Source of the DNA: Andalucia godoyi And28 | Lineage: Eukaryota > Protista > Jakobida | Length of the DNA: 64,000 bases | Direction: 5' to 3' | Assembly (NCBI GenBank): GCA_009859145.1 | Contig: VRVR01000023.1 | Coordinates: forward strand, 255,494-319,493 | In this document: one piece after another, positions 24,820 through 57,500 of the stretch | Layout of the letters: each line of letters opens with the position of its first letter | Position numbering within the stretch: position 1 is the stretch's first letter | The notes under the pieces: model-generated | The model's database searches: none | What the model was told of the DNA's origin: nothing | Seen by the model: only the letters and a program-made list of their open reading frames with translations | Position numbers and translations under genes: made by a program

Positions 24820-27800
24820 ATGTCTAGAAGAAGCAACCGGGCAAAGCATTCAGAACCGGGAATGCCGCAATCCGAGACTAGTGTTCCGCAGCTAGTGAAT
24901 GTATGTTTATTATTATTATTATTATTATTTGCATTTCCTGCCTTCTTCTTCTCCGATACTAATTATTTTCTGTTTTTTCCTTCTCCTTCTTCGTTATTTT
25001 TTTTTATTGGTTGACATGAAATCTTTCACCCAGGAGATTCACGGCAAGCTGTTTCCTACGGATGCAAAGACACAGCCGGAATCGCCGAGTGCAGCCTACT
25101 TTGGGTCTTTGGTGCATTCGCGCATTCTGGGATCGTCGGCCGTGTCCGCGGAGTGCAGGGCCAAGTCGTTTGTTGTTCTGGCGGAAATCTTTCGCTTGTC
25201 CGCACCGAGTGTACCGTCGTTTGAAAATGATGCACATGCGATGTCCGCGTTTCGCTTGTTTGCAGTCGAGTTGACGCATATTCAACAGGAGGATTCGCCG
25301 TATTTTGAATTGTACTTCTCCGGACTGGAAAAGCTGGCGCTGTCCAAATGCTTCTCGCACGTGTTCGAAGCGTTGCATTCGCTGTTCCAGGAGTTGGTGG
25401 AGGCAGTTTTGGAATCTGCAAACCCCGGTTCGTCCGGAAAGATCGAGCAGTACTTGGCAGATTTACTCACAGCATTGTTTGAAAAATACACAGACGACGG
25501 AGAGGACATGGACACTGTTTTTGCATCCATCTTGGAAAAATTGATTGCATTCAAGGACAAGGATGGCAACATAGTGTTCCCCGGGGCGTACGGGGTCGTT
25601 TCGCGGATGCTGTTATCGTGCTCGGATGTTCTGCAGCATCCGATCTCGCGCATCATTTCTGATTCCGTCGTGAAAGGATCTTCGTCCATCAAGCTGTTCA
25701 AAGAGCGCAAAACGCTGCACGAGATTATTTTTCAGTTGAACCAAATATCCTCCAATCTTCTACTCTTTGCTCTACCTTCTATTGCGCAAGGTCTCGACGT
25801 GGAGGCTGACGATGCAAGGCTCGCAACCGTCACACTTCTGTGCAGAATGTTTTCTTCCGAGAAGTCTACCTTGTTTTCCGAGTACGAGGGGATGTTCCAG
25901 GCTTTGCTGAGCAGATTCACGGACCGCGCTGGGCATATTCGGTTGGCACTGACGCATTTTTCAAAGGTCATGTTGCTGCATCACCCAACATCTGCTGCGG
26001 CACTGAACAGTCATCTTCGAAATCGGACGCTGGACGTCGAAGACGGAGTGAGGCGTGCGGTTGTCAGCACAGTTCTTTCTGTTGCACAACAAGACCTCTC
26101 GCTCATTGACGAAGTGGTGTTGCGAGAGGTTGGGTCTCGTTGCCACGACAAGAAGCATGCTGTGCGATCAGTTGCTGTTGACGGCCTCGTAGCATTGTAT
26201 AAGCAGTACATTCGACGTGTTGTGAGCAAGTCCTTGCCGGCAGCGGAGTGCAAGAAACTGTCGTGGATTCCCGACGTCTTGCTGGCAGCCTACATGTCGA
26301 TGGACGAGGAGCTGAGAATGACGTCAGAACGGCTTTTGGACTCGATTCTGTCCTTTGGGGAGTCCATGGAGGAACGAGCAATCTTGTTTATTCATTTGAT
26401 CAGTAACTTGTCGGCCGCGGGGATGCAAATCTTCAAAACAATGTTGGACACCAAGAAAAAGTCTTCGGAACACTTGAGCACGATCGTCCAGCTCAATCAG
26501 CAGGGACTGGATTTCACGAATGAAAAAGTGAGACGACATGTCGATGCATTGGCTGGCATGTTTCCATCCAGCAGCCGTTCCATGATTTCCGATATTGTCG
26601 TCAAGATTTACGCGCAATGCCGATCGACAAAGTTCGCTGGCCGCATTTTGTCAATTACTCAGCCCGTGACAGAGCATGACGAAATGGTGGATCACATCAA
26701 ATCTCTTCTCAAGTCGACGAAGGATCTGTCACTTTCCGATGACCACGTTCCTTGGTATCATTTTCTTGTGCGTAGATGTTCGTATGCTTCGATTTGCTCC
26801 TCGGTGCTGGAAGCCGTTGCGTCCTTGGCGATCGCGAGCCCAGATCCCACTGCCGGAAGTGCCTCTCTCATCATCTTGAATATGATCGCCGACAGATTCC
26901 CTCTGGCGCTTGGAAATTGCATGTCATCCCTGGCCCAAGTTGTGACCGAATCCAAGGGCGAAACTGCAGCTGAAAGTGCCATGCGTGTTCTCAGCAAGTG
27001 CGGTGCAGGATTAGAATCTTCAAACCCGTCTCTGTACCGCACGCTGCGATCCAAGTTCGAGTCATTTTGCATCTCGAGCCGACCTCGGCTGTCCAAATAC
27101 TCGGTCCGTCTCGCGTCGATTGGTGCGACCAATCCTGACGTTCTGTTGTCTTCGTTGTCCAGAAAGCTGCAGGACAACTGTCGCGAAGGGGCGTATCTGG
27201 GAGCTGTCCTGAGCGGCGTCTCAGAAATGCAAAAGGTCTCCAAGTTTGTGTTTGACAACATGCAGGAGGATGTTCTGACGTTCATTACCAGTGTTGTTTT
27301 GTCCTCGAGCGTCCCCAAGAATCTCCCAGATTCCGTGTCAATTGAGCAGCCAAACTCCTTCTGCGTTACAAAAAAGTACGGTCTCAAAATCCTGTCGAGA
27401 CATCTCACGAAAACGTTTGATGGAGCCCTCTTCGAAGACTTTGCAAAGTTCGTCAATGCAGTTTTCGACCGAAAGTTCTCAGTACCGGGGCACACAAGTC
27501 AAGTCGCACTGGAATATTTTTCTGGACGCAGCGTTCTGCGTCTTTTGGCAGAACCCACCACAGAGGCCCACGTTCCATTGTCCCTGTTCTACAGCTGCAC
27601 CCGCAGCGTACTGTTGAACGAAGACTCGCAAGTTCGCCTCATGTTCCTCTCCAAGGCGTATGCTCTTGTTCGGCAACAGCGTCTGCCTGTCAAGTATTTT
27701 TCGCTCTTTGTCATTGGTTGTATTGACCCAGATGCATCCGTTGCTGAGCGTAGCCGTGAATGCCTTCGTGACGTGCTGTCCGTGTTTTTCCACATTGTGC

Positions 27801-28516
27801 AGCAGCACAGCGTCACCATGAATAAGGGGTTTGCGTATACCATCATGCCAGAATACGCCATCCCGCCGCTGGTTCATATTCTGGCGCACGTGACGGAGGA
27901 TGTAGACTACAATCTTGTCGCCCGTTGTTTGCAGGTGTATTTGGAAGAGCTTTTTGCAGACGGACGAGGCAGCGGAACGCTAGCCGCGCAGCTCTTTCAA
28001 TCGCTCAAGGCGTACGACGATACCATGTCGCCGAACTCGGATCGCTGTCGCGAGATCTGCGATATTGGATCACTCGTTTTGCAGCAGGTTTCAGAAGGCC
28101 GGGTCTTTACGATTACGGATTTGTCAGGAAAAATCCAAATCATCCCCAAGATGTTCTCCGCCGCTGCGGACCGCCGGAAGGCATCGAAGACGTATGTTCC
28201 GTCCAATTTCCAGGTTCCAAAACGGACCGTTAGCCACGGGAAGTCAAGAGAACTCGTCATGCCGTCGTCGCCCTTTGGGCCAAAAGCCGGCGTTGCAACG
28301 TCCCCCGAGACTCCCGCAACCTCATCCTCTGCGAGGAAGAATTCCAGGTCCTCGAGCGAACGAAAGCGCGCCCGGAGTTCGACTTCGAGCCGCAAGTCAA
28401 AGCGCCGTGTTCGCAGAACGACGTATGACGACGACGACGATGATGATGACGGGGAGGAAGATGTAGAAGAAGAACCCGACACGGAGAATGCTGGAGACGG
28501 CGACGAAGATATTTGA
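24820..28516 (+). CDS. PDS5: Sister chromatid cohesion protein PDS5, probably 2 exons: join(24820..24900,25034..28516)
   Basis: LAEIFRLSAPSVP, RLATVTLLCRMF, RTLDVEDGVR, RCHDKKHAVR, KLSWIPDVLL and MPEYAIPPLVHILAH fit PDS5 HEAT motifs. Intron 24901-25033 (GTATGT..TTGAC..CAG) is phase 0; without it the start is ATG 25016. Confidence 0.88.
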
Positions 28517-28581: not shown

Positions 28582-29061
28582 TCAAAGATGGTCTTTCGAG
28601 TCCAGCAGTTTGTAAAGTTTGTGTATCTCGACACGCAATGACGCAATTCTGCAGACAACCTGCAGGGCATGTGAAAACTGCGTTTCGCAACTTCGCAAAT
28701 CTGGATTCACCAGCACTCCAAACCACTGAAGAGGATTCTTTGAGAGCCTGCGAACATCCAGTTCTGACTCGGCATCCTCGGGATCATGTATCTGAACCGG
28801 TTCCTCCAGTCGCTTGTTTGCCACAATTCTGAATTCCACGGATCCATTGCTTCCGTGTTTCTCCACAGAGATCAGCTTCGTCGGCATGATCTCCTTGGGA
28901 ACAAGCTCCGTGCTCACACGAGTGTATCCCATCGTCTTGCGGGCCTTGGCAAGATCAAACCAGCCGGCCTTCAGCATTGCTGAAAGAGACTCTTGAAGCT
29001 CCATAAATTCACCCACTTTTGACACGTACTCTTCAAAGACTGAATCCTCTGTGCCCGTCAT
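28582..29061 (-). CDS. CCDC115: V-ATPase assembly factor Vma22/CCDC115
   Basis: LKAGWFDLAKARKTMG and KNPLQWFGVLVNPDLRSCETQF match the Vma22/CCDC115 signature; ATG at 29061 (159 aa). Confidence 0.88.
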   Translation of the reverse strand: MTGTEDSVFEEYVSKVGEFMELQESLSAMLKAGWFDLAKARKTMGYTRVSTELVPKEIMPTKLISVEKHGSNGSVEFRIVANKRLEEPVQIHDPEDAESELDVRRLSKNPLQWFGVLVNPDLRSCETQFSHALQVVCRIASLRVEIHKLYKLLDSKDHL

Positions 29062-29579
29062 TTCTCCACCCCTAGTACACGTACACAACTTCTCTCTCTG
29101 CCTCTTTCTCTCTCTCCCTCTTTGTCTCTCTGCCTCTTTGTCTCTCTGCCTCTTTGCGGCCACACACCAGAGAGCTACTGCGCACTGCGGAATGCGCGCA
29201 AGTTGGCATCAATTGATTACAAAAACACACTCGGCAACCGTAGTGCGTTGGCGCGCAAATCGAGCCTTTCTTTTTGCATTTCTTTTCGGACATCTTTCCC
29301 CTCTAAAAGACACGCCTCTTTTGCTTCGCTTCTTTGGTTGAACTTCTTGCTTTCCTTTTCGTTTTTCCCTCTTTTCTTACATGTTTTTCTTGTTTTCTTT
29401 TCTCTTTTGTTTTTTTCTCAATATTTAAATCTGCTGGCGCTCTTTCATCTATTCCTCGTTTCTTACATTATTATTTTTTTTAAATCTTATTTTTAATTTC
29501 TCCTTTTTTCTTCTTCTTTCTTTTTTCTTTTTGCGTGTGTGGTTTCTGTGCGCATACGTTGTGAGCGGAGAGAAAGGAA

Positions 29580-32500
29580 ATGTCGGACGCGGAAAGTGCA
29601 TCTTCAGCGGTGTCTGAGCGGTCTGCAAGCCCGGAGGCGACTGAGGAGGAGGAGCAGGAGCAGCTACAGGAACAACCGCAGGCAAATTCTCGTGCTGCGA
29701 AGAACGAGCGGCTTGCAGAATTGAAGCGCAAATTGGATGCAGACAAGTCCAAATCCGCAAAGGAGAGATTTCGGTTTTTGCTGCAGCAGTCTGAGATTTA
29801 CTCGCACTTTGTTACGGGAAACGGTTCAAAGGCTGAACAGTCCTTGTCGCCCAGAAAGGTGGCCAAAGGATCGTCTCGACGAGGGCGCATTACAGAAGCA
29901 GACGAGGACAGAGTGCTTGTGGAAGAAGCCTTGGACGACGAAAACAAGGACGAAGAAAAGCGCGAAGTTGTTGTTCACAGACTATTCGCGTCGCCGCCAT
30001 TCATTACTGGGAAAATGCGTGATTACCAGGTGGAAGGGGTCAACTGGCTAATCAAGCTGTATGATAGCGGGATTAATGGGATCTTGGCGGATGAAATGGG
30101 TCTCGGGAAGACACTGCAGACGATTGCGTTCCTGGGATATCTCAAGCACATGCGAGACGTTTCAGGGCCGCACTTGGTGGTGGTCCCCAAGTCCGTTCTT
30201 GGAAATTGGATGAGAGAATTCCAGCGTTGGTGCCCGTCAATGAAGGTGTTCCGATTCCACGGATCCCAGGAAGAAAGAGAGTCGCAACGCGAGGCAATGA
30301 TTCCGGGGGAGTTTGATGTGCTGGTCACAACGTTCGAGATGGTTTCGCGAGAGAAGTCGACCATTCGCAAGTTCTCGTGGAGATATGTCATTATGGACGA
30401 GGCACATCGCATCAAGAACGAAAAATCGCAGCTGGCAGTGGTGATGCGAACTTTCGATTCGCAGTATCGCTTGCTGCTGACGGGAACGCCGCTGCAGAAC
30501 AATCTGCACGAGCTGTGGGCGCTACTCAACTTCTTGCTGCCGGATATTTTTGATTCTTCCGAGGACTTCGACTCTTGGTTTCATGCGGAGAGCGGACAGG
30601 CAGAGACGGAAATCATTGAGCAACTGCACAAGGTTCTCAAGCCGTTTATGCTTCGTCGACTGAAGGTCGACGTCGAACAGTCCATCCCGCCAAAGAAAGA
30701 AGTGCTCGTCCATTGTGGTCTGTCGGAGGTTCAGAAAAAGCTGTACCGCAATATTTTGTTCAAGGACGTTGCTGCGATCAATGGCATTACTACTGACCGA
30801 GTGCGCTTGCTCAATATTGTCATGCAACTGCGAAAGTGTTGCAATCATCCGTATCTGTTCGAAGGAGTCGAGCCCGGTCCACCCTATACCACAGACATGC
30901 ATTTGATTACAGCCTCGGGCAAACTTGCGCTGCTGGATCGATTGTTGGCCAAGCTGAAAGCTCAAGGTTCACGAGTTCTCATATTCAGTCAAATGACCCG
31001 CGTTTTGGATATTTTGGAGGATTATCTTCTCTTCCGAGGCCATGAATATTGCCGCATTGACGGACAAACGGAAACGAATTCGCGGGAAGAATATATGGAC
31101 GAGTTCAACAAGGAGAATTCTTCAAAGTTTTGCTTCCTGCTGTCGACACGCGCTGGTGGCTTGGGAATCAATTTGGCGACGGCCGACGTTGTCATCTTGT
31201 TTGATTCGGACTGGAATCCTCAAGCGGATTTGCAAGCACAGGACCGTGCGCATCGAATCGGTCAGCGAAAGCCAGTTACTGTTCTTCGCCTCGTCACAGA
31301 AGGAACCGTGGAAGAAAAGGTTATCGAGCGAGCCATGAAGAAGTTGTTCTTGGATGCCATGGTCATTCAGCAAGGTCGTCTGGCAGATCAGACTTCGGCT
31401 GTTTCGAAAAATGAACTGATGTCCATGATTCGTTTCGGTGCGGAACAGATCTTCAAGTCGTCGGATTCAACCGTAACTGACGAAGACATTGACGTGTTGC
31501 TAGCCCAAGGTGAAGATCGGTTCAACAAGATGAATGCAAATTTCAAGCAAAACTGCACGAACAATTTGCTTGCCTTTTCGCTGACCGAAGACTCGTCGCT
31601 GTACACCTTTGAGGGTGTTGCCTTGTCGTCTGCTCCCACGGACACCGTTCGCATCTCTGGGTTGCCAGACGACGGGTCCGTCACAGTCGAGGATTTGTTG
31701 ACGGAATGCGACAAAAGCGGCACAATTTCTGGGTACAAGTACGATCCGACGAAGGGCTATGCCATGGTTCGTTTCGAATCCAAGGAAGGCGCCGTTTCCG
31801 CGGTGGAAGGCTTGAATGGGAAGTCGCCATTCAAGAGCGATATGCCGCTCGTTGTTGAGTTTACAAAGTCGAATGATTCCATCTTTTCCATCTCTCAGGT
31901 GAATGAATGGATGCCGAAGCGTGATCGTGGCCGGGCTGTCTATTCCGAAGATGCATATTACCGAGAAATCCTCTCCAATCGTCCCGTGGAGCCCGCACAG
32001 CCCAAAGGGCCTCGCATGCCCAAGCAGGTGACCGTGAATGATTTTCAGTTCATGAATAAGGCACGAATCGATGAACTGAACGAGAAAGAGCGCAACTTTG
32101 TTTTGGAGCACTTTGCTGCCAAAACGACAGCATCGCATCCGGATAACAAGCTTTCCGAAGCGGAACTGTCTGTGAAATACTCGCTGACTCCGGCGGAGGA
32201 AGAGGAGCGCAAGAAGTTGCTCAGTCAGGGGTTCCTCTCGTGGTCCAAGAAGGATTTTTATGCGTATGTTCGAGCGCTGGAAAAGTACGGCCGAAAGGAT
32301 GTTGAGGCTATTGCAAAGGATGTCGAAGGCAAAGGTGTAGACGAGGTTCGTCGGTACCATCGAGCTTTCTGGGAAAAGTATTCTGAGATTGCCGAGTACG
32401 ACAGGATTATCAAGCGAATCGAAAAGGCGGAAGCGCAGCTGGAGAAGAACAGCGCCATGCAAGCAGCACTGGAATGGAAGATCTCCCAGTATGAGAAGCC

Positions 32501-33029
32501 CTTTTTGGAGATGAACGTTCCGTACGGCACCAAGACGAAGTCGCCGTACACTGAAGACGAGGACCGATATCTGATCAGCATGACGGGCCAGGTTGGGTAT
32601 GGGAACTGGGAGACACTGAAGATCGAAATCCGAGCAGCATGGGAGCTTCGCTTCGACTGGTTCCTGAAATCCAGATCTCCTCAAGAGCTTGGGCGTCGGG
32701 TCGAGTCGCTGGTCCGACATATCCAGAAGGAGTATGAAGAGGAGCTTGCTCGGCAAGCAGAACAGAAGAAACGGTCCAAGACGCCAAACAAGAGGGAGCC
32801 AGCGGCTTCGGCGTCCGAGAGTACGCCAAGGAATTCGGCGAAGAAACGATCTGCTTCCGAGGATGATTTGACGAAGACGGGATCTGGGAAGAAGGGCGCA
32901 AAGCCGCCAGCATCTGCAAAGAAGGAAACGCCGAGCAAAGGATCCGCAAAGAAGCGGTCTGCTGCGGAAGCGGAGATCGAAGTGAGTGTCACGTCATCTG
33001 CGAAGAAGATTCGAAGGGCCAAAGAGTAA
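29580..33029 (+). CDS. ISWI: ISWI-family chromatin remodeller (SNF2H/SMARCA5-like) with an inserted RRM
   Basis: MRDYQVEGVNWL, ILADEMGLGKT, DEAHRIKN, LTGTPLQNNL, STRAGGLGINL, QAQDRAHRIGQ; HAND-SANT-SLIDE region (GFLSWSKKDF, YTEDEDRYL, DWFLKSRSPQEL). Confidence 0.96.
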   Translation: MSDAESASSAVSERSASPEATEEEEQEQLQEQPQANSRAAKNERLAELKRKLDADKSKSAKERFRFLLQQSEIYSHFVTGNGSKAEQSLSPRKVAKGSSRRGRITEADEDRVLVEEALDDENKDEEKREVVVHRLFASPPFITGKMRDYQVEGVNWLIKLYDSGINGILADEMGLGKTLQTIAFLGYLKHMRDVSGPHLVVVPKSVLGNWMREFQRWCPSMKVFRFHGSQEERESQREAMIPGEFDVLVTTFEMVSREKSTIRKFSWRYVIMDEAHRIKNEKSQLAVVMRTFDSQYRLLLTGTPLQNNLHELWALLNFLLPDIFDSSEDFDSWFHAESGQAETEIIEQLHKVLKPFMLRRLKVDVEQSIPPKKEVLVHCGLSEVQKKLYRNILFKDVAAINGITTDRVRLLNIVMQLRKCCNHPYLFEGVEPGPPYTTDMHLITASGKLALLDRLLAKLKAQGSRVLIFSQMTRVLDILEDYLLFRGHEYCRIDGQTETNSREEYMDEFNKENSSKFCFLLSTRAGGLGINLATADVVILFDSDWNPQADLQAQDRAHRIGQRKPVTVLRLVTEGTVEEKVIERAMKKLFLDAMVIQQGRLADQTSAVSKNELMSMIRFGAEQIFKSSDSTVTDEDIDVLLAQGEDRFNKMNANFKQNCTNNLLAFSLTEDSSLYTFEGVALSSAPTDTVRISGLPDDGSVTVEDLLTECDKSGTISGYKYDPTKGYAMVRFESKEGAVSAVEGLNGKSPFKSDMPLVVEFTKSNDSIFSISQVNEWMPKRDRGRAVYSEDAYYREILSNRPVEPAQPKGPRMPKQVTVNDFQFMNKARIDELNEKERNFVLEHFAAKTTASHPDNKLSEAELSVKYSLTPAEEEERKKLLSQGFLSWSKKDFYAYVRALEKYGRKDVEAIAKDVEGKGVDEVRRYHRAFWEKYSEIAEYDRIIKRIEKAEAQLEKNSAMQAALEWKISQYEKPFLEMNVPYGTKTKSPYTEDEDRYLISMTGQVGYGNWETLKIEIRAAWELRFDWFLKSRSPQELGRRVESLVRHIQKEYEEELARQAEQKKRSKTPNKREPAASASESTPRNSAKKRSASEDDLTKTGSGKKGAKPPASAKKETPSKGSAKKRSAAEAEIEVSVTSSAKKIRRAKE

Positions 33030-33097: not shown

Positions 33098-33218
<121 letters not shown>

Positions 33219-41562: not shown

Positions 41563-41870
41563 ATTTATATCTGAAATCCCAAACACAGGTTTGGTGAAGA
41601 AAAATCGTTTGTACAAAAAAAATATATAAAAAAAGTGAATAATCTGCTGTAGACGTTTCCCGCCGTCAAAGCGCGTTTTCGTGTTTGCGCTCCGAAATTC
41701 AAATCGGAGGAGGTTTAACAATCCTACGTTTTCCCCCTTCCAACATTCAAAAAAAGTCTCTTTCCGCTTCATTTCCGTTCATTTTCTTTCCTACCGAAAT
41801 CTCAACTCTCAGCTCTCAATTTTCATTCTGCGAATCTGCGAATCTCTCTTTTCTTACAAGGCAGTGCAGA

Positions 41871-43562
41871 ATGTTCTTCTCGACGAATGTGCTGACCAAG
41901 AAGGGTCCGTTAGCGAGGATCTGGATTGCAGCATTTGAAGCTCGGTCTCTGAAGCGTCCAGAGATCACGAGTACTGACATTGAAGAATCCGTCGAGTCGA
42001 TTATGAATCCAGACGTTCCTATTGCGCTGCGTACTTCCGGCCACTTGTTGCTTGGAGTAGTTCGTATCCACTCGAAGAAGATCGACTTTCTGTTGCAAGA
42101 CGCAGTCGATGCAAAATTGAAAGTCCAGATTTCAGTGGTCCGTGTTGCTTCGTCTGCAATGACTGCGCTCTCGCTCTCGAAAACAACTTCCAAACGAGCC
42201 GCAGTGACTTTGGCGTTGCAGGAACTGCCAGCATCCTTTGCGACCTGGGATGTCGATATCACCGCGCTTCCTGCATTCGCCTTGCATGACCATTCCGAGG
42301 TTTTGATGAACAGTTCAACAAGCCAAGCGACGGCCGCAGGAGCAGCAGGAGCATTGCACCAGAAGAATGTCTCGTTTGTAGGGTTTGGAGCTGAAAGTGT
42401 AGACAGGAGTTTCGAGGACGAGCATCTGAGTGTGTACGATACGTCCAGACAGTCACTAACAGAGCAAGAAGCAACGCAATCCATGGGCATTCGGTATGAC
42501 ACGGGGGGCTTCACAGACATTGAGGAGCCAGAAATGCTCCGTGCTGGTGAAGTTGAGATGGCAAGGTTTGATGGGGGAGCCGAAGAACTCGGCTTTGGAA
42601 TGGACGAAGACTTTGCACCCAATCCGATTGCCAAGGATGCAGCGGAATCCATTCCCGATTTCGACACATCCATGCACGACCTATCGATTCAAGGTCCCAC
42701 CAGTAGCAGTGTGGTGGGTGGAATCCGAGGGAGTTCCGCTCCTGCAGCTGTCGCTCCTCATCCTCCATCGTCTGCTTCTGGAATTACGGAGCGAAGAAAA
42801 TTGGCTTCAAAGCGGAAGCGCAACGTTCCAGACTCCGTCACAGAATTGGACTCCAAGAGAATGAGAGATATGATCAAAGACCCGTCGGCTCTCGTGAGAA
42901 CATTCACAATACAAGATGTACTTGGTGAGTCCGACAGGGCCGTCAAGCGCAGACGTCTGGACGCATTGCCGAGCGTGGATGCGATGGCGATTTCTGGCTC
43001 CATCCTTTTGCAGCAAGAACTTGCAAAAATGATGAGGTTATCTGCTGTTTCAAGCGCCGTTTCCATTGACGGTGACGTGTCCACTCGCTTGGACGAATCT
43101 GTGGAGGAATTCCGCGGAGAACACATTACTGAGTCTGTCATGGTTCCCAGCTCCCCTGGCGTCCATCCGCCAGACACGTCAAAGGACGCTGCAGTCGAAT
43201 TCCAGGAGTCGCAAGACATTTCGCATGACGATCGTCCGTCTGCGCTGAGCTTTGTCGACGAGGAGCTAGGGTTTGGAATGGAAGATGAAAGTGCATCTGC
43301 ATTCCGCCATTCTCCATCCAATACTGTACAGTACGAGTCCCTCTCTGCATTGCTTAATGCAAAGTCTCTTGATGACAGTATTGATTTCGCGAATGCTGTT
43401 TCCAAGATCGGAACACCGGCATCCAGACGAGCTCGAGCAGCCAAGGCGTTTTACCACATGCTAATCCTGCAGTCGCAGGGTGTGATTGAGACCCGTCAGG
43501 CTCATGTTTTTGGCAACATTTCCATGCGTCGTGTGCGTGCCGTTCCAGAAGTGAGTGCCTGA
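41871..43562 (+). CDS. RAD21: Cohesin alpha-kleisin RAD21/SCC1 (Rec8 not excluded)
   Basis: MFFSTNVLTKKGPLARIWIAA..IALRTSGHLLLGVVRIHSKK N-terminal domain; C-terminal winged helix RRARAAKAFYHMLIL..GVIETRQAHVFGNI; ATG at 41871. Confidence 0.9.
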   Translation: MFFSTNVLTKKGPLARIWIAAFEARSLKRPEITSTDIEESVESIMNPDVPIALRTSGHLLLGVVRIHSKKIDFLLQDAVDAKLKVQISVVRVASSAMTALSLSKTTSKRAAVTLALQELPASFATWDVDITALPAFALHDHSEVLMNSSTSQATAAGAAGALHQKNVSFVGFGAESVDRSFEDEHLSVYDTSRQSLTEQEATQSMGIRYDTGGFTDIEEPEMLRAGEVEMARFDGGAEELGFGMDEDFAPNPIAKDAAESIPDFDTSMHDLSIQGPTSSSVVGGIRGSSAPAAVAPHPPSSASGITERRKLASKRKRNVPDSVTELDSKRMRDMIKDPSALVRTFTIQDVLGESDRAVKRRRLDALPSVDAMAISGSILLQQELAKMMRLSAVSSAVSIDGDVSTRLDESVEEFRGEHITESVMVPSSPGVHPPDTSKDAAVEFQESQDISHDDRPSALSFVDEELGFGMEDESASAFRHSPSNTVQYESLSALLNAKSLDDSIDFANAVSKIGTPASRRARAAKAFYHMLILQSQGVIETRQAHVFGNISMRRVRAVPEVSA

Positions 43563-43716: not shown

Positions 43717-46233
43717 TTACAAGTCTATTTGGTCTCCTGCAGCCGGGGTCCTCAAAATCTTGGTTCGGGATCCAAAAGCGCCGGCATACTCCGCGAGGGG
43801 ATCCGAACCAATGTTGTTCCCGGAAGACTGGAGCTTCTCGAGAGCTTTTCGCGACGGTTGGGGGGCTCCCGAAACCGGTTGACGAGCAGCAGTCGCCTGA
43901 GCCGGACCAGAAGATGACGGCGGCGCGGCGCGAGAACGAGCGTCACCACCATTTTGTCTAGGAGTGGACGGTCTGACCGGCGGCCGATCCCCAGAGCGCA
44001 CAGATACGGTGGAATTCACACGAGACACCGATGTTCCTGCAAACTCCTTCAGAAGCTCCTCACCCTGGACTTCGTCGGCAACGGGCTGCAATGTTTCATC
44101 TTCATCATCATCAAACTCGTCATACTCTCCTTCTCGAACCAATTCGCTGTCTTCCGCCGTGTCATCGGCTGCGTCGTCATCGTCGTCGTACTGCTCTTGA
44201 TTCTCCGTCGGCGCATTCTTGTCCTCCAGTTCGAGTTGCTGCAGGACGTATTCCAGCTGCTGCTGCTGATGATCATCGCCACGATCCATCAGCAGCGACA
44301 GCAAATCTCCCAGCCCGAGACCCCGGGCGCGTTCACGAATGGACCCGACAGTCAAAATAGAGTACAGCATCCCATTGACATATGTGCGAACCTGAGGGTT
44401 GTCGTACTCCAGTAGATCCATCAGCGTCAACAGAAGTCCGTCTCCGACTTCGTCGCACTTCCGCTTACCGTCAAAACGAAGCGCAAGATTCATCAGCAGC
44501 GCCGTCGCGTACTCAACCGAGTATTCGGAGAGATTTTCAGTGTTCTTCAGGAACCCGACGAGCCACTTGATCACATCTCGTCGTACCATCTCTGCTTGTG
44601 CACGGCGACGTAGCGAGCACTTCTGCAGAGCGCCTAAGGCATTTCTCAACAACGGCGTCTCGCTGTCTTGTGCTTTCAGAATTCGACACAGCTCGACAAT
44701 GAGGGGCAAAGGAGGCATTTCGGGTTCTGCGCCTCTGACATTTTTCACCACCGCTGAAAAGACAAGGTACAAGCGGCCTGCAGAATGGCACGAGACCACG
44801 TTGATGAAGCGAACGAGAGACTCTACGAGAATGGGCGAGCTTGACCGCAGCAGTTCCACAATAAGGCGTCGTGGCTTTGTCGCCGCGGTCTCTCCAGGAG
44901 GCGCACCTTGAACAGACACGCGGTCAATGACGTTCACGCCCAGAACATCCTGTTGCAGCATTCCAAGAAAGATGTGTCTTCTGTCGTGGCCAGGTCTGGC
45001 CGCCATGATGCGCCATCGCAGAGCCTGAAGCAGCAGAGCAATTTCTCGATCCAAGCCCTTTCGAAATCGCAGATGGACCGCTTCAAAATTAATGGAAAAC
45101 GCTGCCTGCGGAGGTGCCCCTCCCGTCACGACAGAGCGGTAGCTCTGCCGATCGCCTCCGGAGCCATTGGAAAAGGAAGAAGCCGCACTGCTTGCAGCCA
45201 TGCCTGCGCCAACTCCCGAGCTTGCCGCACCAGACGAGGAACCACTGGCGACAGGGGCGGTGGCACTGCTTGCGGATGCTGGAACAGGAACACCGCGCTG
45301 CTCAATGAGCCGGAGTCGAAGAATGAAGTCGTCCACCGTTGATCTCCCGACTAGCGTCCCCTTCGAAGCCTTGTCCAACTGCGCAATCAGATCGTGTGCG
45401 ATGGACAGGATTTTCTCCATTTTATCATGATCAACAGCAGCAGAGTGCGACGGAGAGAGAGAACTGCTCGCGGTAGCAGTCGTGGTAATCGAACTTCCCA
45501 TTCCGTTGCCGCCGCTTCCTTTGGAGTCCATGACAGGAGAAGACGACCTTGATGGTGCCGGTGAGCGCTTGGCATGGGATTGCTGCACTTGCCAGCCTGT
45601 GAAGCATGCGTGCAATGTTGGTTCCGGCTCTGTCGATTTCTTGTCCAAATTTTCAGAAATAAATTGCTCCAGTAACGATCGAAGAGCCGACAGCCATTCT
45701 GGCTGAAACAGCCTTGAGAAAGATGGGTGGGACCTCGGATTGCTGACAAACGGCAGCGCAAAATACGGCAGCAGCTCGGCATTCGACACAAACTTTGATG
45801 AATATTGCTCGATGAAATGTCGAAACTGCCCCATGCAGATTGCCATGGACCTGGTGCTCGTTGTGTCGTCATCCAAGAGAGGCTGTATTGCGAAGTAGGC
45901 GTGCAGCTCAATAAGCAATTTCCACGGAACCTTTGAGGACGCCAGTCCAACGTTTGGATAGAGAAAGAGAGAGTCGAAGAGGAAGAAGAAGGAGCTGGCG
46001 TCGCCGCGCTCGAAGCTCTCCATCATTTGCTGCTTTTGAATCTCAGAAAGCGAGCCAAGCGCCAGGACTCCAGGGGACGGCACAATGTCGGCCTTTTCCG
46101 CAACCTCTTCCGAAAACACCTTCGAAGCCTTTACGTAGTTGTGGAAGTTCAAATACTCGAGAACAATGGAATTGATTTGTCGGCGCAGACCCATTGGCGA
46201 CTCTAGTCGCAGAGGGCTCGTAGAACTATCCAT
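43717..46233 (-). CDS. ARMC9: LisH and armadillo-repeat protein ARMC9
   Basis: LisH INSIVLEYLNFHNYVKASKVFSEE; LPYFALPFVSNPRSHPSF, LLQALRWRI, ALGALQKCSLRRRAQ, EYATALLMNLALR, YVNGMLYSIL. Confidence 0.9.
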   Translation of the reverse strand: MDSSTSPLRLESPMGLRRQINSIVLEYLNFHNYVKASKVFSEEVAEKADIVPSPGVLALGSLSEIQKQQMMESFERGDASSFFFLFDSLFLYPNVGLASSKVPWKLLIELHAYFAIQPLLDDDTTSTRSMAICMGQFRHFIEQYSSKFVSNAELLPYFALPFVSNPRSHPSFSRLFQPEWLSALRSLLEQFISENLDKKSTEPEPTLHACFTGWQVQQSHAKRSPAPSRSSSPVMDSKGSGGNGMGSSITTTATASSSLSPSHSAAVDHDKMEKILSIAHDLIAQLDKASKGTLVGRSTVDDFILRLRLIEQRGVPVPASASSATAPVASGSSSGAASSGVGAGMAASSAASSFSNGSGGDRQSYRSVVTGGAPPQAAFSINFEAVHLRFRKGLDREIALLLQALRWRIMAARPGHDRRHIFLGMLQQDVLGVNVIDRVSVQGAPPGETAATKPRRLIVELLRSSSPILVESLVRFINVVSCHSAGRLYLVFSAVVKNVRGAEPEMPPLPLIVELCRILKAQDSETPLLRNALGALQKCSLRRRAQAEMVRRDVIKWLVGFLKNTENLSEYSVEYATALLMNLALRFDGKRKCDEVGDGLLLTLMDLLEYDNPQVRTYVNGMLYSILTVGSIRERARGLGLGDLLSLLMDRGDDHQQQQLEYVLQQLELEDKNAPTENQEQYDDDDDAADDTAEDSELVREGEYDEFDDDEDETLQPVADEVQGEELLKEFAGTSVSRVNSTVSVRSGDRPPVRPSTPRQNGGDARSRAAPPSSSGPAQATAARQPVSGAPQPSRKALEKLQSSGNNIGSDPLAEYAGAFGSRTKILRTPAAGDQIDL

Positions 46234-46369
46234 CCCAGGCAGCAAACAAAAAAGCACGATCGGTCGCTCGAGTGAATATTATAGAAGAAGCAGAAGAAAG
46301 AAGAAAGAAGAAGAAGAAGAAGAAGTAAGAAGATGAAGATGGGAAAACAAAAGAATCGGCCGTTGCAAC

Positions 46370-51507: not shown

Positions 51508-54500
51508 ATGACGGAAAATCACACAGCACTGCGCTCAGAAGATGTTGTCAACCTCTGTCTGAACCTCAACACGTCCTCCCGAAATTGCGATGGTGTTCTG
51601 GCGCTACGACAAAAGGTAGTCTGTGCGGAGATGCGGTCCGCTGAGAAGTTTCGAGAAAGTGCTCTTTCGTATCTTGATTCGCTTTGGAAGATTGAGGTTA
51701 TTAATGAAAAGGAGCCTGCGGATGCTCCTTCCGTTTCTGCTAATCCCACGATCCGGTACGGTGACAGCGTTCGTCTTATCCACCATATTCGAGAGCGAGC
51801 ACTGTGTCTCAGTCGCGACTGCGCCGATGACAAGACCGGACAGCTGCTGCCGTTTGTCGAAGATAACGAGTCTGCGTCGTCTTCAAAGAATAGTGCTTCG
51901 TGTGTCTGGGTTGTGCAGCCTGGATTTCGGACGCGCACAGTAGGAGATGCTGTGATGCCGAATGATGCTGTTGTTTTGTTCCATCCCTTCACGCAGTACT
52001 ACATCATTTTCCCAGAGGTATACGATGCCATCCGGGACGGATGTTGTCCAAAATTAGTGGGTTCTCCGCTACCTCGCTGTTCGTGGAGGATAGTGTTTCA
52101 CTCGACGAATGCACATTCGCGATGGACGATGGGACAAGTCTCCAAGATTGTGCACTGCGAATCAAAACGGGTATTATGTACGACTCCCCAAATTTTGGAA
52201 GAGAGAGTTTCTGATGGCCAAAATGCAAGTCATCAAGATGGTGTGAAAATTGGAAATTCTCTGCTCAATCCTTTCACATCCGTTTCCAATTTGATTTCTG
52301 ATTCGCTTTGCTATCGGCATCGCGTGGCCTCCGATTCCATGGACAATCCGTTGTTTTCGTCGCAGCTGTGGATTATCGAGCCGCTGGATCCGTTGCGAAC
52401 TGGGACAGACATTCGATTTGGAGACGAGGTCCGTTTCAGGCACCTTCCTACGCAAACCTGGCTGTCGCTTGACAAGTCTCAGTCAGTGTTTGCACCTGAA
52501 GACCGCGATGAGTTGAATATCACCGTTTTGGAAACAGGAGGAGCACGTGGCACAGGAGGCACAGGAGGCACAGGAGACACAGGAGGAACAGGGGGGAATG
52601 GAGCAGTCGAAGAAAAGAAATCGATTTTGAGCCTGTTGAAATTGTTCCGCAGCGCTACTGCTGCACAAGAGTCCGCAGAAGCGGGAGGCAAGGCCGCTGG
52701 ATCTTCCAATGTTTCAGTCCCGCAGTCCAGACCTCTTTATCTGACTCCAGAGACAGGAGATGTCTTTGTAATTTCACCGCTGGAGCTTCTGTCATCTGTT
52801 CCGCTTATGCACTCCTCTTATTTTTGCATCGTGCACAAGAAGTCCGGGAGGAGTCTGTGCATGAGTGTGAACGGAGTTCCAGTTCTTCGACACGAGCGCG
52901 ATATTTCCAATGCATATCGTTTTTCTTCTGTCGATTCTTCAAGCCTGAGCGCATTGGTCGACGCGGTGAATGCGCTGGACGTCCTTTTGGACGGGTCCAT
53001 GGCTGCATGGAACTCGTTCATCTTTGCTTCGAAGCTGGAGCAAAATTCGTTTGTATCCTTACACGGGCTTCAGTACATTCTTTGGAAGCTACGGAAAATC
53101 CGACACGACATTGACGACGACTCGGATTCAGATGCAGAGGATACAGAATCCGCAAACCCACTTTCTACCTCATCTGCGACGAAGACACCGAAGAACGTGA
53201 GACATTGTCCTGCGTTGCAGTCGCTTCTGCGTTTTTTGAGGTTGGTGTGCGAGGATAACGAGGATGCATGCAGTTCCTTGGATTCCAGCGCAATATCTCT
53301 TATCATGAGTTTTGCAAGAGAGTTTTCGTTCGAGTATTCTCGCACCGCAGTTGAAGCGCTGACGACGATTTTCCTTTCTTCTTTCTTTCAGCGAAACTCC
53401 TTGGATTCCGATGATTTTGTCGATTTTTTCGAGTTGTATTCTGCAGCGGCGGAGCTTCCGAGCTTCCGGATTCTACTGTTGAATTTATTGTCGGCCCTGT
53501 GCTTCAATTGTCCTCGAAACAGAGCAGCAATCGGGTTAGTGCTTCCGAAATCGATATGTCATGTTTATTCTATCTCGGAACTCGATCGGTCTGTGACGGT
53601 TTTGCAAATTGGTTCAAGCTCTCCTCGTTTGCCCTTCGCATCTGCTCTGCAGAGGGGTGAGACCGAGCCTCTGCACCTCGCGTTTTTGCGCTTCGCCATT
53701 GTTCTTTGCGATTCCGAACAAACCAGGGAAAAGAAGGGGTTTGTTCAGCCCGTTTTACAGCAGTGTCTGCCTTTGTTTCTCATAACACGAGTAATTGCCG
53801 AGGCTCCCACGCATGTTGAATTGCGCATTTCTCTTCTAAGATTGATTCGTTTACTCTACGTTGAGTACGATGCAATGCATTTTTCTGTCGAATTCGTTCG
53901 TCCGATACTGGCGAGTGGCTCCGCAGATGCATCGGCAGGCTTCACCTCTGAATCGCCGAATGACTCTCGTGTTACGGAATTGATGCATACCAGCGGAACC
54001 ATGCAAAAGGCGGGGGAGGAGGGCTTCTTGGCGCTTCGAAATTTATTGAAGACCCTCGTAAGCGACCCAAATATTTCGTATCAGTTATTGCATGAAATTT
54101 TGCAAGTTGTTGCGTCATATATACGATTTCGGACATTTGAAAATCGTACGTTTCCAGCTCCCGAAGTGCGAGACATGTTTGTTCCTCTGTTTTCGATTCT
54201 AGTCACATTTTGCGACATCCCGATTGCTGCAGAGGCCGGGGGCGCCAAGGACGAAGCTTCGCGACTGTCTTTAAACATGCGAAGAAGAACGGCACAATCA
54301 GCGCAGGAAACAGAGTTGCGGACAACGAAGATTCCCTTGTCGATCCTCGAAATACTGCAAATTGCGCAACAGGTCTTTCTTGACAGACGCCTTGGAATGC
54401 TGCACAACATGTATGAACGGTCTTCTTCCGAAGATGTCTTTTCTTCTTCTGCAGAAGTCTTCGAGGTCTCGCTTTCTGCGCTTTTGGAAGAGTACGAATT

Positions 54501-57500
54501 GCGCGAAGCATTCAAAAGTGTGATGGTTCATTTATTTTCCACTGATACGAATGCGCATGATATCGGTGCACTTGCATTGCACATTATGGATCATGAAGAA
54601 AGACTCGAACACGTGACGCTTGCCTACTTTTTTAGCTGCAGAGTTGTATCCCTTGCTGTCCGAAACGTGAACCTTTCCGAGATTAAGTCGTTTGTTTGGA
54701 GCAACCTGAAATCACTGTCACTGGTGCTATTGAGCCCAGCAATACTGATTGATAATCTATCATTAGTTGCGCTTCCGGCTTTGGATGCGCTCTGTCTGGT
54801 TCTGGATTCCAGCTATGCACCCATTGCTCGAGAATACATGTGCGTTTGGGACCTTCCTGCTGCTTTGCTTCCTATTTTCACGCCATTGTTCACGTCTCAG
54901 TACGCAGAGAATCTTCGAGAGGTGTATGTGCGTGCCTATGATCTGGTGACAAAATTTGTTTCCGGCCACGGGGATGCAGCCTCGAGAATCGTAGCGCGTG
55001 CTCCTATCTATCGCGATTCAACGCGCCGTTTGGTCAAGTATTATCCAAAGGAGGTCACGAACCTTTGGAGCCAGGCTGTCGTTGCCAATCCCCAAGCTGT
55101 GTGGTCCTTCATTTTGGATGAAGCGAGCATCAAGGAGATTTGCGCGTCACCAATTCAGCAAATTGCAGCCTTTCTTGTTTCGCTGACGACTCACGAGGAA
55201 ACCCCAAAATGGTATTTCACGGTTGCGCTGCGGTCTCTCTTGGAATGTAATGCGAGCATGGATTCCTTCAAGAAGGGTTTCGCGCCGACTTCCATACTAG
55301 AACCAGTTGTTGTCGGGGTTTTGGCAGCGTTGTCCAGTTGCAGGGACCCAGTTGTGGAACGAACATGTCGATCTCTGATCCCGCTGAAGGTTCTGAGAAG
55401 CCATGTGGATGAGTCCGTTGAATATATGACATTTTTTGTGAACCTCTTTTTACGATCCATGTTCGGAGATGATCTGTCCGAGTCCGCTGAATGCTCTCTG
55501 CTTCCTGCAATATTTCGATTCTTGTCGGAGAAAGTACAGGCAGTTTTGAGCGATCATGGCAGGCTGGAGTCCGAGAAACTAGAGTTGTTTCGAAACGTAT
55601 ATCTATCTCCGTTTATTGCTTTTTTGGAATCCCTGTTTGCAGCAGGGGATCGCGCAAACGTGCCCCAGTGGATGGAGATTGTCCGCATGGAAATTTGCGC
55701 GTCATTTTCGCTGTGGAATACGGTTTCTGGACAGTTTTCGTCGCAGCTATTGAAAGAGCGCATTACGTACTTGTTTACGTTGAATCAGCAAATCGAAGAG
55801 CGAAACAACAAGGTGTCTCTGAAGGACAGGCTCAAGAACTCCGTATCGCGGCATAAGTCAACTGCGAGCGGGAAAGCGTTCGCCGCCAGCGATGCAATGT
55901 CGGATGCAGATCACGAGGATGTCCCCATGCTGGACGTCGAAAGTGAAGGATCGGATATGACTGACGCTTCTTCGGAAGGTACGACCAACAGTTCAAATGG
56001 AGATGAAATCGTGGAGGATGCTTTCAAGGTCTTTCAGCGAGACGTGCTGAGTGAATTTTCCTCTGCACTCGATGAGCAACGAGAAAACCGACACATATTC
56101 CTCCAAAATTTGCCGACTGAAACGCTGCGACGTTTTCTGAATTTCATTGGTTCGAGCCCGGAGTGGTTTACGTCTTCCGAGAAACAAATGTGGATCCGAT
56201 ATTGGCTATCCCTGATTCGCGATTTTTCGGGCCGGTCCATGGACAATCAGTCCCGTCTTGATGACGCTGGGGCGACTATCCGCATTCTGGAGACGCTTAG
56301 AGACAGTCGTTTGCTTCCCAGAGCAGATCGGCTTCTGTATCAAGCCGAAGCCCTGCAAACGCTGATGTTCTTGGCGAAGAATGGTAACACTTCGGTGCAG
56401 AGGACAATTCTGAATTTTGTGGAAACCGTTGATGGATTCTTGATTGATTTGCTATTAGAGGTTCTGCGAAATGCAAAATTTGGACAGCATGCTTCCGACG
56501 CTTCTTTGGAAGTGTTGCTGGCCTCCCCGAACCCGTTCAAAGAACATGTCACCTCCTTCATTGACAAGCCTTTTGATGATGGATTGCCATCCGCAGAGAG
56601 GTCTTTCGTCTCTGTGACAGAACCGCTGATGATCGTCCTTGGCTTGATTCAACAGCTGTGTGAAGGCCACAATTTAAGAGCGCAGATTGCGCTAGGCTCT
56701 CTCGTTGAGCCGTTGTTGCAGCTGTTCCTATTGTTTTTCAGGCCGGACCGGCTCACATCGCGTCTTCCAACAGTATGGACCCAAGTCTTGCGGACGCTTT
56801 CGGAGCTTGTCCAGGGTCCTTGCGCACAGAATCAGACGGCGTTCTTGTTATTCGTCACCAAGCACGATGTGCTGCAGCAGATTGCGTCTTTCAGGCCTCG
56901 CATTCTTGAGATCCTTGCGGACAGGATGCCAGAAAAGAGTCTGAAGAAGTACCACAAGAAGTATGTGCGAATCAACAACAAGAAACTACGGACGAATGCA
57001 CTTGACGAATTCGGCGACGCCGGTGACGGTGTTTTTGAGCGAGATGACGACGAAGAGGACGACGATGGTTTTGAAGCTGCATGGGTGGTTCCCATGTTGG
57101 CATCCACAAAGAATGAGTGGCAATTTCTGTCAGAGTTTGTGACGCTCATTCGTTCGCTGCTGGAAGGAGGTCAGTATTTGCAACAGATCAACGCGCTCTC
57201 TCTGATCCTGCTCCCGTCTTACTGGCTTGTTCAGAGTCTCCGCATGTACTTCTTGTATCGCCACCTAAGACGTGGCGATCCGGTTTCGGCGGAAAATTTG
57301 CTCGTCAATTGCATCGCGCCGTGCTATCTGTTGTATCGCTCGATATCACTGAGTTCCGACCAAGCACGCATTCCGCCGTTGGACAGGTACATTGGCTGTG
57401 TGGAGATTACGTACCCAGATGGCTTTGTTGGCCCTTACACGTATCTCAAACCAATTTGGAACGTCCAACTTCGTAGTGCAGATCGAAAGCTTGTCGTTTT

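Follow-up and report, generated by a model that had tools for sequence, protein, structure and literature searches.

The stretch analysed here comprises 64,000 nucleotides of Andalucia godoyi And28 (contig VRVR01000023.1, positions 255,494 to 319,493 of the forward strand); we refer to this whole stretch as the window and count all positions from its first base. It carries a gene for an ISWI-type chromatin remodeller (P0001) that contains an RNA-recognition motif (RRM) in the hinge between its ATPase and its HAND domain. The reading frame of the gene is unbroken across 3450 bases, and the EukProt protein model matches the full 1149-residue product exactly. The features along the gene are the following.

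29580..33029 (+): ISWI-type Snf2 ATPase gene, single exon, complete, 1149 amino acids (aa); from the open reading frame (ORF) and Pfam
29871..29912 (+): AutoN-like basic/acidic motif SSRRGRITEADEDR, aa 98-111; read from the sequence
30024..30857 (+): SNF2-related ATPase lobe 1, aa 149-426; Pfam PF00176 (SNF2-rel_dom), 342.7 bits
30921..31262 (+): Helicase_C ATPase lobe 2, aa 448-561; Pfam PF00271, 100.9 bits
31377..31619 (+): NegC/post-ATPase region ending in SSLYTFEG, aa 600-680; aligns to human SNF2H
31641..31865 (+): RRM-fold insert, aa 688-762; from Pfam RRM_1, AlphaFold2 and Foldseek
31647..31664 (+): RNP2-like hexamer VRISGL, with a non-aromatic residue, Arg, at position 2
31752..31775 (+): RNP1-like octamer KGYAMVRF, with Tyr at position 3 and Met at position 5
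31866..31904 (+): post-RRM segment KSNDSIFSISQVN, with a short predicted helix and an Asp invariant in a seven-sequence alignment (A1)
31917..31934 (+): basic motif KRDRGR, aa 780-785; counterpart of the SNF2H acidic-patch-binding motif KRERK
31950..32213 (+): HAND, aa 791-878; Pfam PF09110, 43.6 bits
32400..32735 (+): SLIDE, aa 941-1052; Pfam PF09111, 119.2 bits

The scores of both ATPase lobes, HAND and SLIDE are far above the Pfam cut-offs. SANT was not flagged in the Pfam scan of the protein; the start of this domain, GFLSWSKKDF, can be aligned to SNF2H (up to residue 856) and to the HSS (HAND, SANT, SLIDE) structure of Drosophila ISWI (1ofc). The N-terminal motif SSRRGRITEADEDR appears to resemble the ISWI AutoN motif. 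With a two-lobe ATPase, a NegC region, the basic motif and the HAND and SLIDE domains all present, the gene is a bona fide ISWI. An antisense ORF of 418 aa (31500..32756) that overlaps the gene is an unsupported, mechanical by-product of the ORF list. A perfect compound microsatellite, (AC)24.5 followed by (AG)34.5, occupies positions 33100-33216, 70 bases 3' of the ISWI stop codon, and gives rise to a THTH.../RERE... run within a spurious ORF.

Alignment to canonical ISWIs allows for a precise placement of the insert. Human SNF2H/SMARCA5, Drosophila ISWI and plant CHR11/17 share with the window protein the ATPase lobes, NegC, the acidic-patch motif, HAND and SLIDE, but in the hinge they have no RRM and only about 10 residues where the window protein has 94. 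A phmmer comparison with the PDB pairs aa 600-680 with residues 636-717 of SNF2H and aa 775-899 with its residues 728-856, leaving 94 residues of the window ISWI in place of 10 in the human protein. The distance between FEG, at the end of SSLYTFEG (aa 672-679), and KRDR, within EWMPKRDRGR (aa 776-785), is ~99 aa, compared with ~20 aa in canonical ISWIs such as P0002 and P0003 (...FEG.DYREKQK....WIEPPKRERK). The original prediction had described an ISWI with a ~75-aa in-frame RRM insert between the NegC region and HAND. The peptide it quoted is the exact translation of bases 31641-31865, the flanking landmarks SSLYTFEG and EWMPKRDR lie where it had put them, and the position relative to the neighbouring domains follows from the SNF2H alignment and the Pfam HAND match.

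The segment is a genuine RRM-fold domain. A 127-aa excerpt matches Pfam RRM_1 with 29.2 bits (E 8.6e-7), and the whole protein matches it with 23.7 bits over aa 701-749, both above the cut-off of 20.7 bits. In a sequence search of the PDB with the excerpt, the best matches are all RRMs (Pab1, TIA-1, HuC, Npl3 and Rna15). An AlphaFold2 model built from alignment A1 adopts the beta-alpha-beta-beta-alpha-beta topology, with predicted local distance difference test (pLDDT) scores of 75-87 in the core; DSSP assigns beta1 to residues 689-693, alpha1 to 703-711, beta2 to 716-722, beta3 to 727-732, alpha2 to 735-745 and beta4 to 758-762. A Foldseek comparison of this model with the PDB returns 602 chains at E<=0.001, and the best 50 of the 602 are all RRM entries. 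The top matches include Rna15 (2x1a, E 5.2e-7, target template modelling (TM) score 0.78), U1A, HuR and PABPC1, with target TM scores up to 0.80 and a probability of 1.00. A profile of the insert run against 1.8 billion proteins also pulls in ordinary multi-RRM proteins, with E-values down to 1e-21; the four that were checked are RRM_1 proteins. Two of the checks that had been proposed for the domain, the RRM_1 profile comparison and the structure prediction, bear it out.

On either side of the RRM, pLDDT drops below 50, suggesting that the domain is probably a bead on flexible linkers. Within the segment that follows it, KSNDSIFSISQVN, the invariant Asp corresponds to D106 in A1, and the predicted short helix spans model residues 108-111 at a pLDDT of ~60.

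Inserts of this kind are not confined to the window. A whole-protein search retrieved P0004, a 1243-aa protein from the Logan assembly SRR15116022 that is 58% identical to the window ISWI, and found an insert at the same site in ISWIs of Naegleria fowleri (FDP41_010836), Acrasis kona and Willaertia magna, as well as in several JGI and Logan proteins. An exhaustive HMMER search of the same 1.8 billion proteins with the A1 insert profile added further ISWI fragments with the insert at this site. The seven sequences behind the profile include no euglenozoan; its matches include, beside Heterolobosea sp. BB2, the euglenid Ploeotia vitrea (E 2.6e-23) and the diplonemids Namystynia karyoxenos (1.1e-11) and Flectonema neradi (1.0e-8), each as a single stretch through flank, RRM and flank. 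Many metagenomic proteins also bear a homologous insert at the site, and the combination of SNF2, Helicase_C, RRM_1 and SLIDE was confirmed by Pfam in Namystynia and in the metagenomic P0206. When examined individually, 9 of 13 orthologous insert excerpts match RRM_1, the best with an E-value of 2.1e-11.

An alignment of 24 family sequences displays a single insertion point, located between LY.FEG.DYS..PT and the basic motif. The sequences have in common a ..PT.. lead-in to beta1, in which the Thr is nearly invariant, and the same fold-defining hydrophobic pattern. Identity of the inserts to the window copy across lineages is 21-36%. Heterolobosean ISWIs agree with the window protein in insertion point, in the beta-alpha-beta-beta-alpha-beta pattern and in an Asn-Asp-x-Phe segment after beta4, which is kept in these two groups but not in Euglenozoa. 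They differ from it in their RNP1, which reads KKSxxLYF and has no aromatic residue at position 3 or 5, and in most of them the basic motif has lost its W..P.KRER form. A neighbour-joining tree of ISWIs places the window gene and P0004 in a clade of their own, apart from Heterolobosea and diplonemids. We read this pattern as one ancient insertion inherited by Heterolobosea, Euglenozoa and the window lineage, rather than as a private gain or as convergence. Since the inserts are orthologous across these lineages, and probably also to the RRM insert published for trypanosomatid ISWI, the RRM is an inherited lineage feature of this ISWI type.

Individual members of the family display peculiarities of their own. 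The insert of Acrasis kona (P0008) lacks the beta3-alpha2 stretch, owing either to a deletion or to an error in the gene model. Willaertia magna (P0082) has an Asn-rich low-complexity insertion of ~35 aa after beta1, and Heterolobosea sp. BB2 (P0272) a Glu/Ala/Pro-rich expansion of ~25 aa in the alpha2-beta4 loop. The 12.9-kb Logan contig that carries the closest relative, P0004 (L001, SRR15116022), is intron-free and gene-dense at 58.6% GC; there, genes for MIF4G, PAXNEB and a DEAD-box helicase neighbour P0004, without synteny to the window.

Such an architecture has a published precedent. The ISWIs of Trypanosoma cruzi and T. brucei were described as containing a 75-aa RRM-containing region, which was called exclusive to trypanosomatids (Díaz-Olmos et al. 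2020, PMC7233268). As in the window gene, this region of ~75 aa follows the ATPase and precedes HAND, at residues 726-801 in TcISWI versus 688-762 here. The window gene differs from the trypanosomatids in its mixed-strand, compact locus, in the separate clade that it forms with P0004, and in an identity of ~55-59% to plant ISWIs over ~55% of the protein (best local alignments, mainly in the ATPase half). A full-text literature search found no RRM in an ISWI described besides this account. The statement in the original prediction that no ISWI with a built-in RRM was known had therefore been overtaken in 2020, and the claim of a novel architecture fails as well, as the same arrangement occurs in public heterolobosean, Ploeotia, diplonemid and metagenomic proteins. 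The RRM-containing ISWI is not a new architecture, and the window gene is a further member of a published kind. What is new here is a distribution wider than the published one, the exact placement beside the acidic-patch motif, and the lack of conservation of the RNA-contact residues. The only published account treats the insert as a trypanosomatid peculiarity, whereas our data extend it to Heterolobosea, euglenids, diplonemids and the window lineage; with this wider distribution, the insert can be studied in non-pathogenic, tractable protists.

Two kinds of search give a poorer picture of this distribution. Word-index protein searches gave no matches with a 171-aa excerpt and only one 95-aa fragment with a 13-sequence insert alignment; this index is insensitive to short divergent queries, and neither outcome is evidence of rarity. 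RRM_1 is absent from the precomputed Pfam lists of the window protein and of the ISWIs of Naegleria, Acrasis and Willaertia, and it appears only as a 'faint' hit for P0004, so a domain-architecture query would under-report RRM-containing ISWIs. This omission may explain why the architecture looks unknown. A search for contigs encoding the window ISWI protein found none on record.

In SNF2H, KRERK is the acidic-patch-binding motif, for which R736 and the adjacent conserved Y742 are named (PMC8115915, PMC11185735). According to phmmer, KRDR of the window protein (aa 780-783) aligns to K735-R738 of this motif, with EWMPKRDR matching EWIEPPKRER. The last strand of the RRM ends ~18 residues N-terminal of this basic motif. 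What is understood of ISWI regulation comes from opisthokonts and centres on AutoN, NegC, the acidic-patch motif and the HSS module. An entire branch of eukaryotes in which a folded domain immediately precedes the acidic-patch anchor represents a natural experiment on this hinge.

The residues that contact RNA in classical RRMs are conserved to a far lesser extent than the fold. The window copy has one of the three canonical aromatics, Tyr727 at position 3 of RNP1, and carries Arg at position 2 of RNP2 and Met at position 5 of RNP1. Among the 24 family sequences, an aromatic residue occurs at RNP1 position 3 in one (the window copy), at RNP1 position 5 in one, and at RNP2 position 2 in seven, all of them euglenozoan. 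Position 4 of RNP2 is Asp or Glu in 15 of the 24. The net charge of the domain is -5 in the window copy and ranges from -8 to +3 in the family. Judged by these sequences, conservation lies in the RRM core rather than in the classical RNA platform. Pfam RRM_occluded also matches five of 13 inserts, and several family members have weak Pfam matches to RRM_occluded and RRM_PARP14_3. Chromatin enzymes with non-canonical RRMs, such as Set1/SETD1, SPEN/SHARP and PARP14, likewise harbor this fold within a chromatin-acting protein, and occluded or extended RRMs can be compared as well. They have no specific sequence relationship to the insert, and the likeness would be a functional analogy. The insert was also considered as a U2AF homology motif (UHM) and rejected, as the window copy has K-S-P-F instead of R-X-F in the alpha2-beta4 loop and the motif, compared by eye, is not conserved in the family.

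These observations can be best explained by an inherited, flexibly tethered, non-canonical RRM insert that would most likely act as an interaction or regulatory module, a reading to which, taken as a whole, we assign a probability of roughly 0.6. A non-canonical role is favored because the core is conserved but the RNA platform is not, because some inserts match RRM_occluded, and because of the Asn-Asp-x-Phe helix; the conservation across the family points away from textbook RNA binding. The RRM sits in the hinge from NegC to the HSS on low-confidence, probably flexible linkers, and might serve there, next to the acidic-patch anchor, as a tethered module for interaction or regulation. The partner that it might bind near the nucleosome face could be an accessory protein, the surface of a histone or a nucleic acid with structure. 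Binding of this partner would then tune the acidic-patch anchor and the engagement of the HSS, instead of the domain reading single-stranded RNA via a classical aromatic platform. For this more specific part, the function beside the anchor, we would put the chances slightly short of even.

Several points weigh against the tethered non-canonical module. The window copy has the most canonical RNP1 of the family (KGYAMVRF), and many RRMs with an incomplete set of aromatics are functional RNA binders. Same-site homology to the T. cruzi and T. brucei inserts rests on the published coordinates (726-801) together with the diplonemid and euglenid intermediates. Finally, a pull-down of T. cruzi ISWI recovered RNA-metabolism proteins, from which its authors raise a link to RNA (PMC7233268), and this result would fit RNA binding too.

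The strongest alternative is a canonical RNA-binding RRM, on whose beta-sheet nascent or non-coding RNA would recruit or gate ISWI, giving RNA-guided or RNA-regulated remodelling. It is consistent with the evident homology to RRM_1, with the fold and with the co-purification just mentioned, and Lys725, Tyr727, Arg731 and Arg691 are exposed on the sheet of the window copy. With K-G-Y-A-M-V-R-F on beta3 and an Arg on beta1, the window copy is a better candidate for canonical binding than most of its relatives, and direct RNA binding by it, through Lys, Tyr and Arg on beta3 and the Arg on beta1, is possible on these residues. However, most orthologues lack the stacking aromatics, an acidic residue prevails at RNP2 position 4, and the domain is net acidic, while a function kept across such distances should keep its binding surface. 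We consider this alternative rather unlikely.

An RRM captured anciently and now drifting might also be an inert or structural spacer that only lengthens the linker from NegC to the HSS. The low identity between lineages could point in this direction, as could the lineage-specific loop expansions in Willaertia and BB2 and the apparent internal deletion in Acrasis. Retention of both the hydrophobic pattern and the insertion site across Heterolobosea, Euglenozoa and the window lineage argues instead for purifying selection over very long times, and the gap in Acrasis may stem from a faulty gene model. A mere spacer thus appears improbable.

Equally much of a long shot is a bolder variant, in which an ancient hinge add-on, Discoba-wide or, should it reach beyond Discoba, older, would gate the acidic-patch anchor: whether the basic motif can engage the nucleosome would depend on whether the RRM has bound RNA or a histone surface specific to the lineage. 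If true, nucleosome spacing would be switched in an RNA- or histone-variant-dependent manner. The acidic patch of the T. brucei nucleosome is atypical and 'refractory to known binders' (PMC10450195); speculatively, the RRM insert may have co-evolved with it.

Independent insertions of an RRM at the hinge in several lineages would be conceivable, given that the hinge is a permissive loop and that identity between lineages is low. Such convergence is highly improbable considering that a profile without euglenozoans still retrieved euglenid and diplonemid ISWIs across flank, RRM and flank, and that the motif before beta1 is common to the inserts and their insertion point identical.

An unrecognised intron or an assembly chimera as the source of the insert is effectively excluded by the continuous frame over the whole gene, by a segment that itself encodes a domain above the Pfam threshold, by a public gene model equal to the ORF, and by homologous inserts both in P0004, whose intron-free gene lies on a separate genomic contig, and in transcript-derived proteins of four species (the Heterolobosea sp. 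BB2, Ploeotia vitrea, Namystynia karyoxenos and Flectonema neradi homologues are Trinity transcript assemblies). The same evidence upholds the earlier claim of a continuous, exonic frame.

The surrounding locus is compact, with ~50% GC and long single-exon genes on both strands, and this mixed-strand arrangement rules out a trypanosomatid-style polycistronic array. Its style fits the published description of the Andalucia godoyi genome, which comprises ~20 Mb of mostly intron-less genes, tightly packed and in both orientations (Gray et al. 2020, PMC7050145). In a cluster look-up, proteins of the window were present in EukProt only and absent from NCBI and UniRef. An Rfam scan of the window gave no matches.

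Two cohesin-related genes flank ISWI, namely PDS5 at 24899-28516 (+), with a Pfam score of 446 bits, and Rad21/Rec8 at 41685-43562 (+), with both N- and C-terminal domains. The clustering of three chromatin genes (PDS5, ISWI and Rad21/Rec8), with the cohesin pair within ~17 kb of ISWI, is probably a coincidence. Codons 1-39 of the PDS5 ORF (MYVYYYYYYYLHF..., 24899-25015) have the look of a TAT-repeat leader and not of coding sequence; a protein begun at Met40 has no exact public model either, which indicates that the annotated start is elsewhere. A 16-bp tandem repeat in four copies (TCTCTCTGCCTCTTTG, 29093-29156) lies at the 5' end of a Vma22/CCDC115-like ORF (28582-29163, -) and encodes the Arg/Glu/Lys-rich N-terminus of its protein. 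At 43717-46257 (-) there is a homologue of ARMC9 with CTLH-like and ARM domains; as ARMC9 is a ciliary protein, the source organism is expected to be flagellated. A single-exon ORF of 2450 aa at 51508-58860 (+) has an identical EukProt model.

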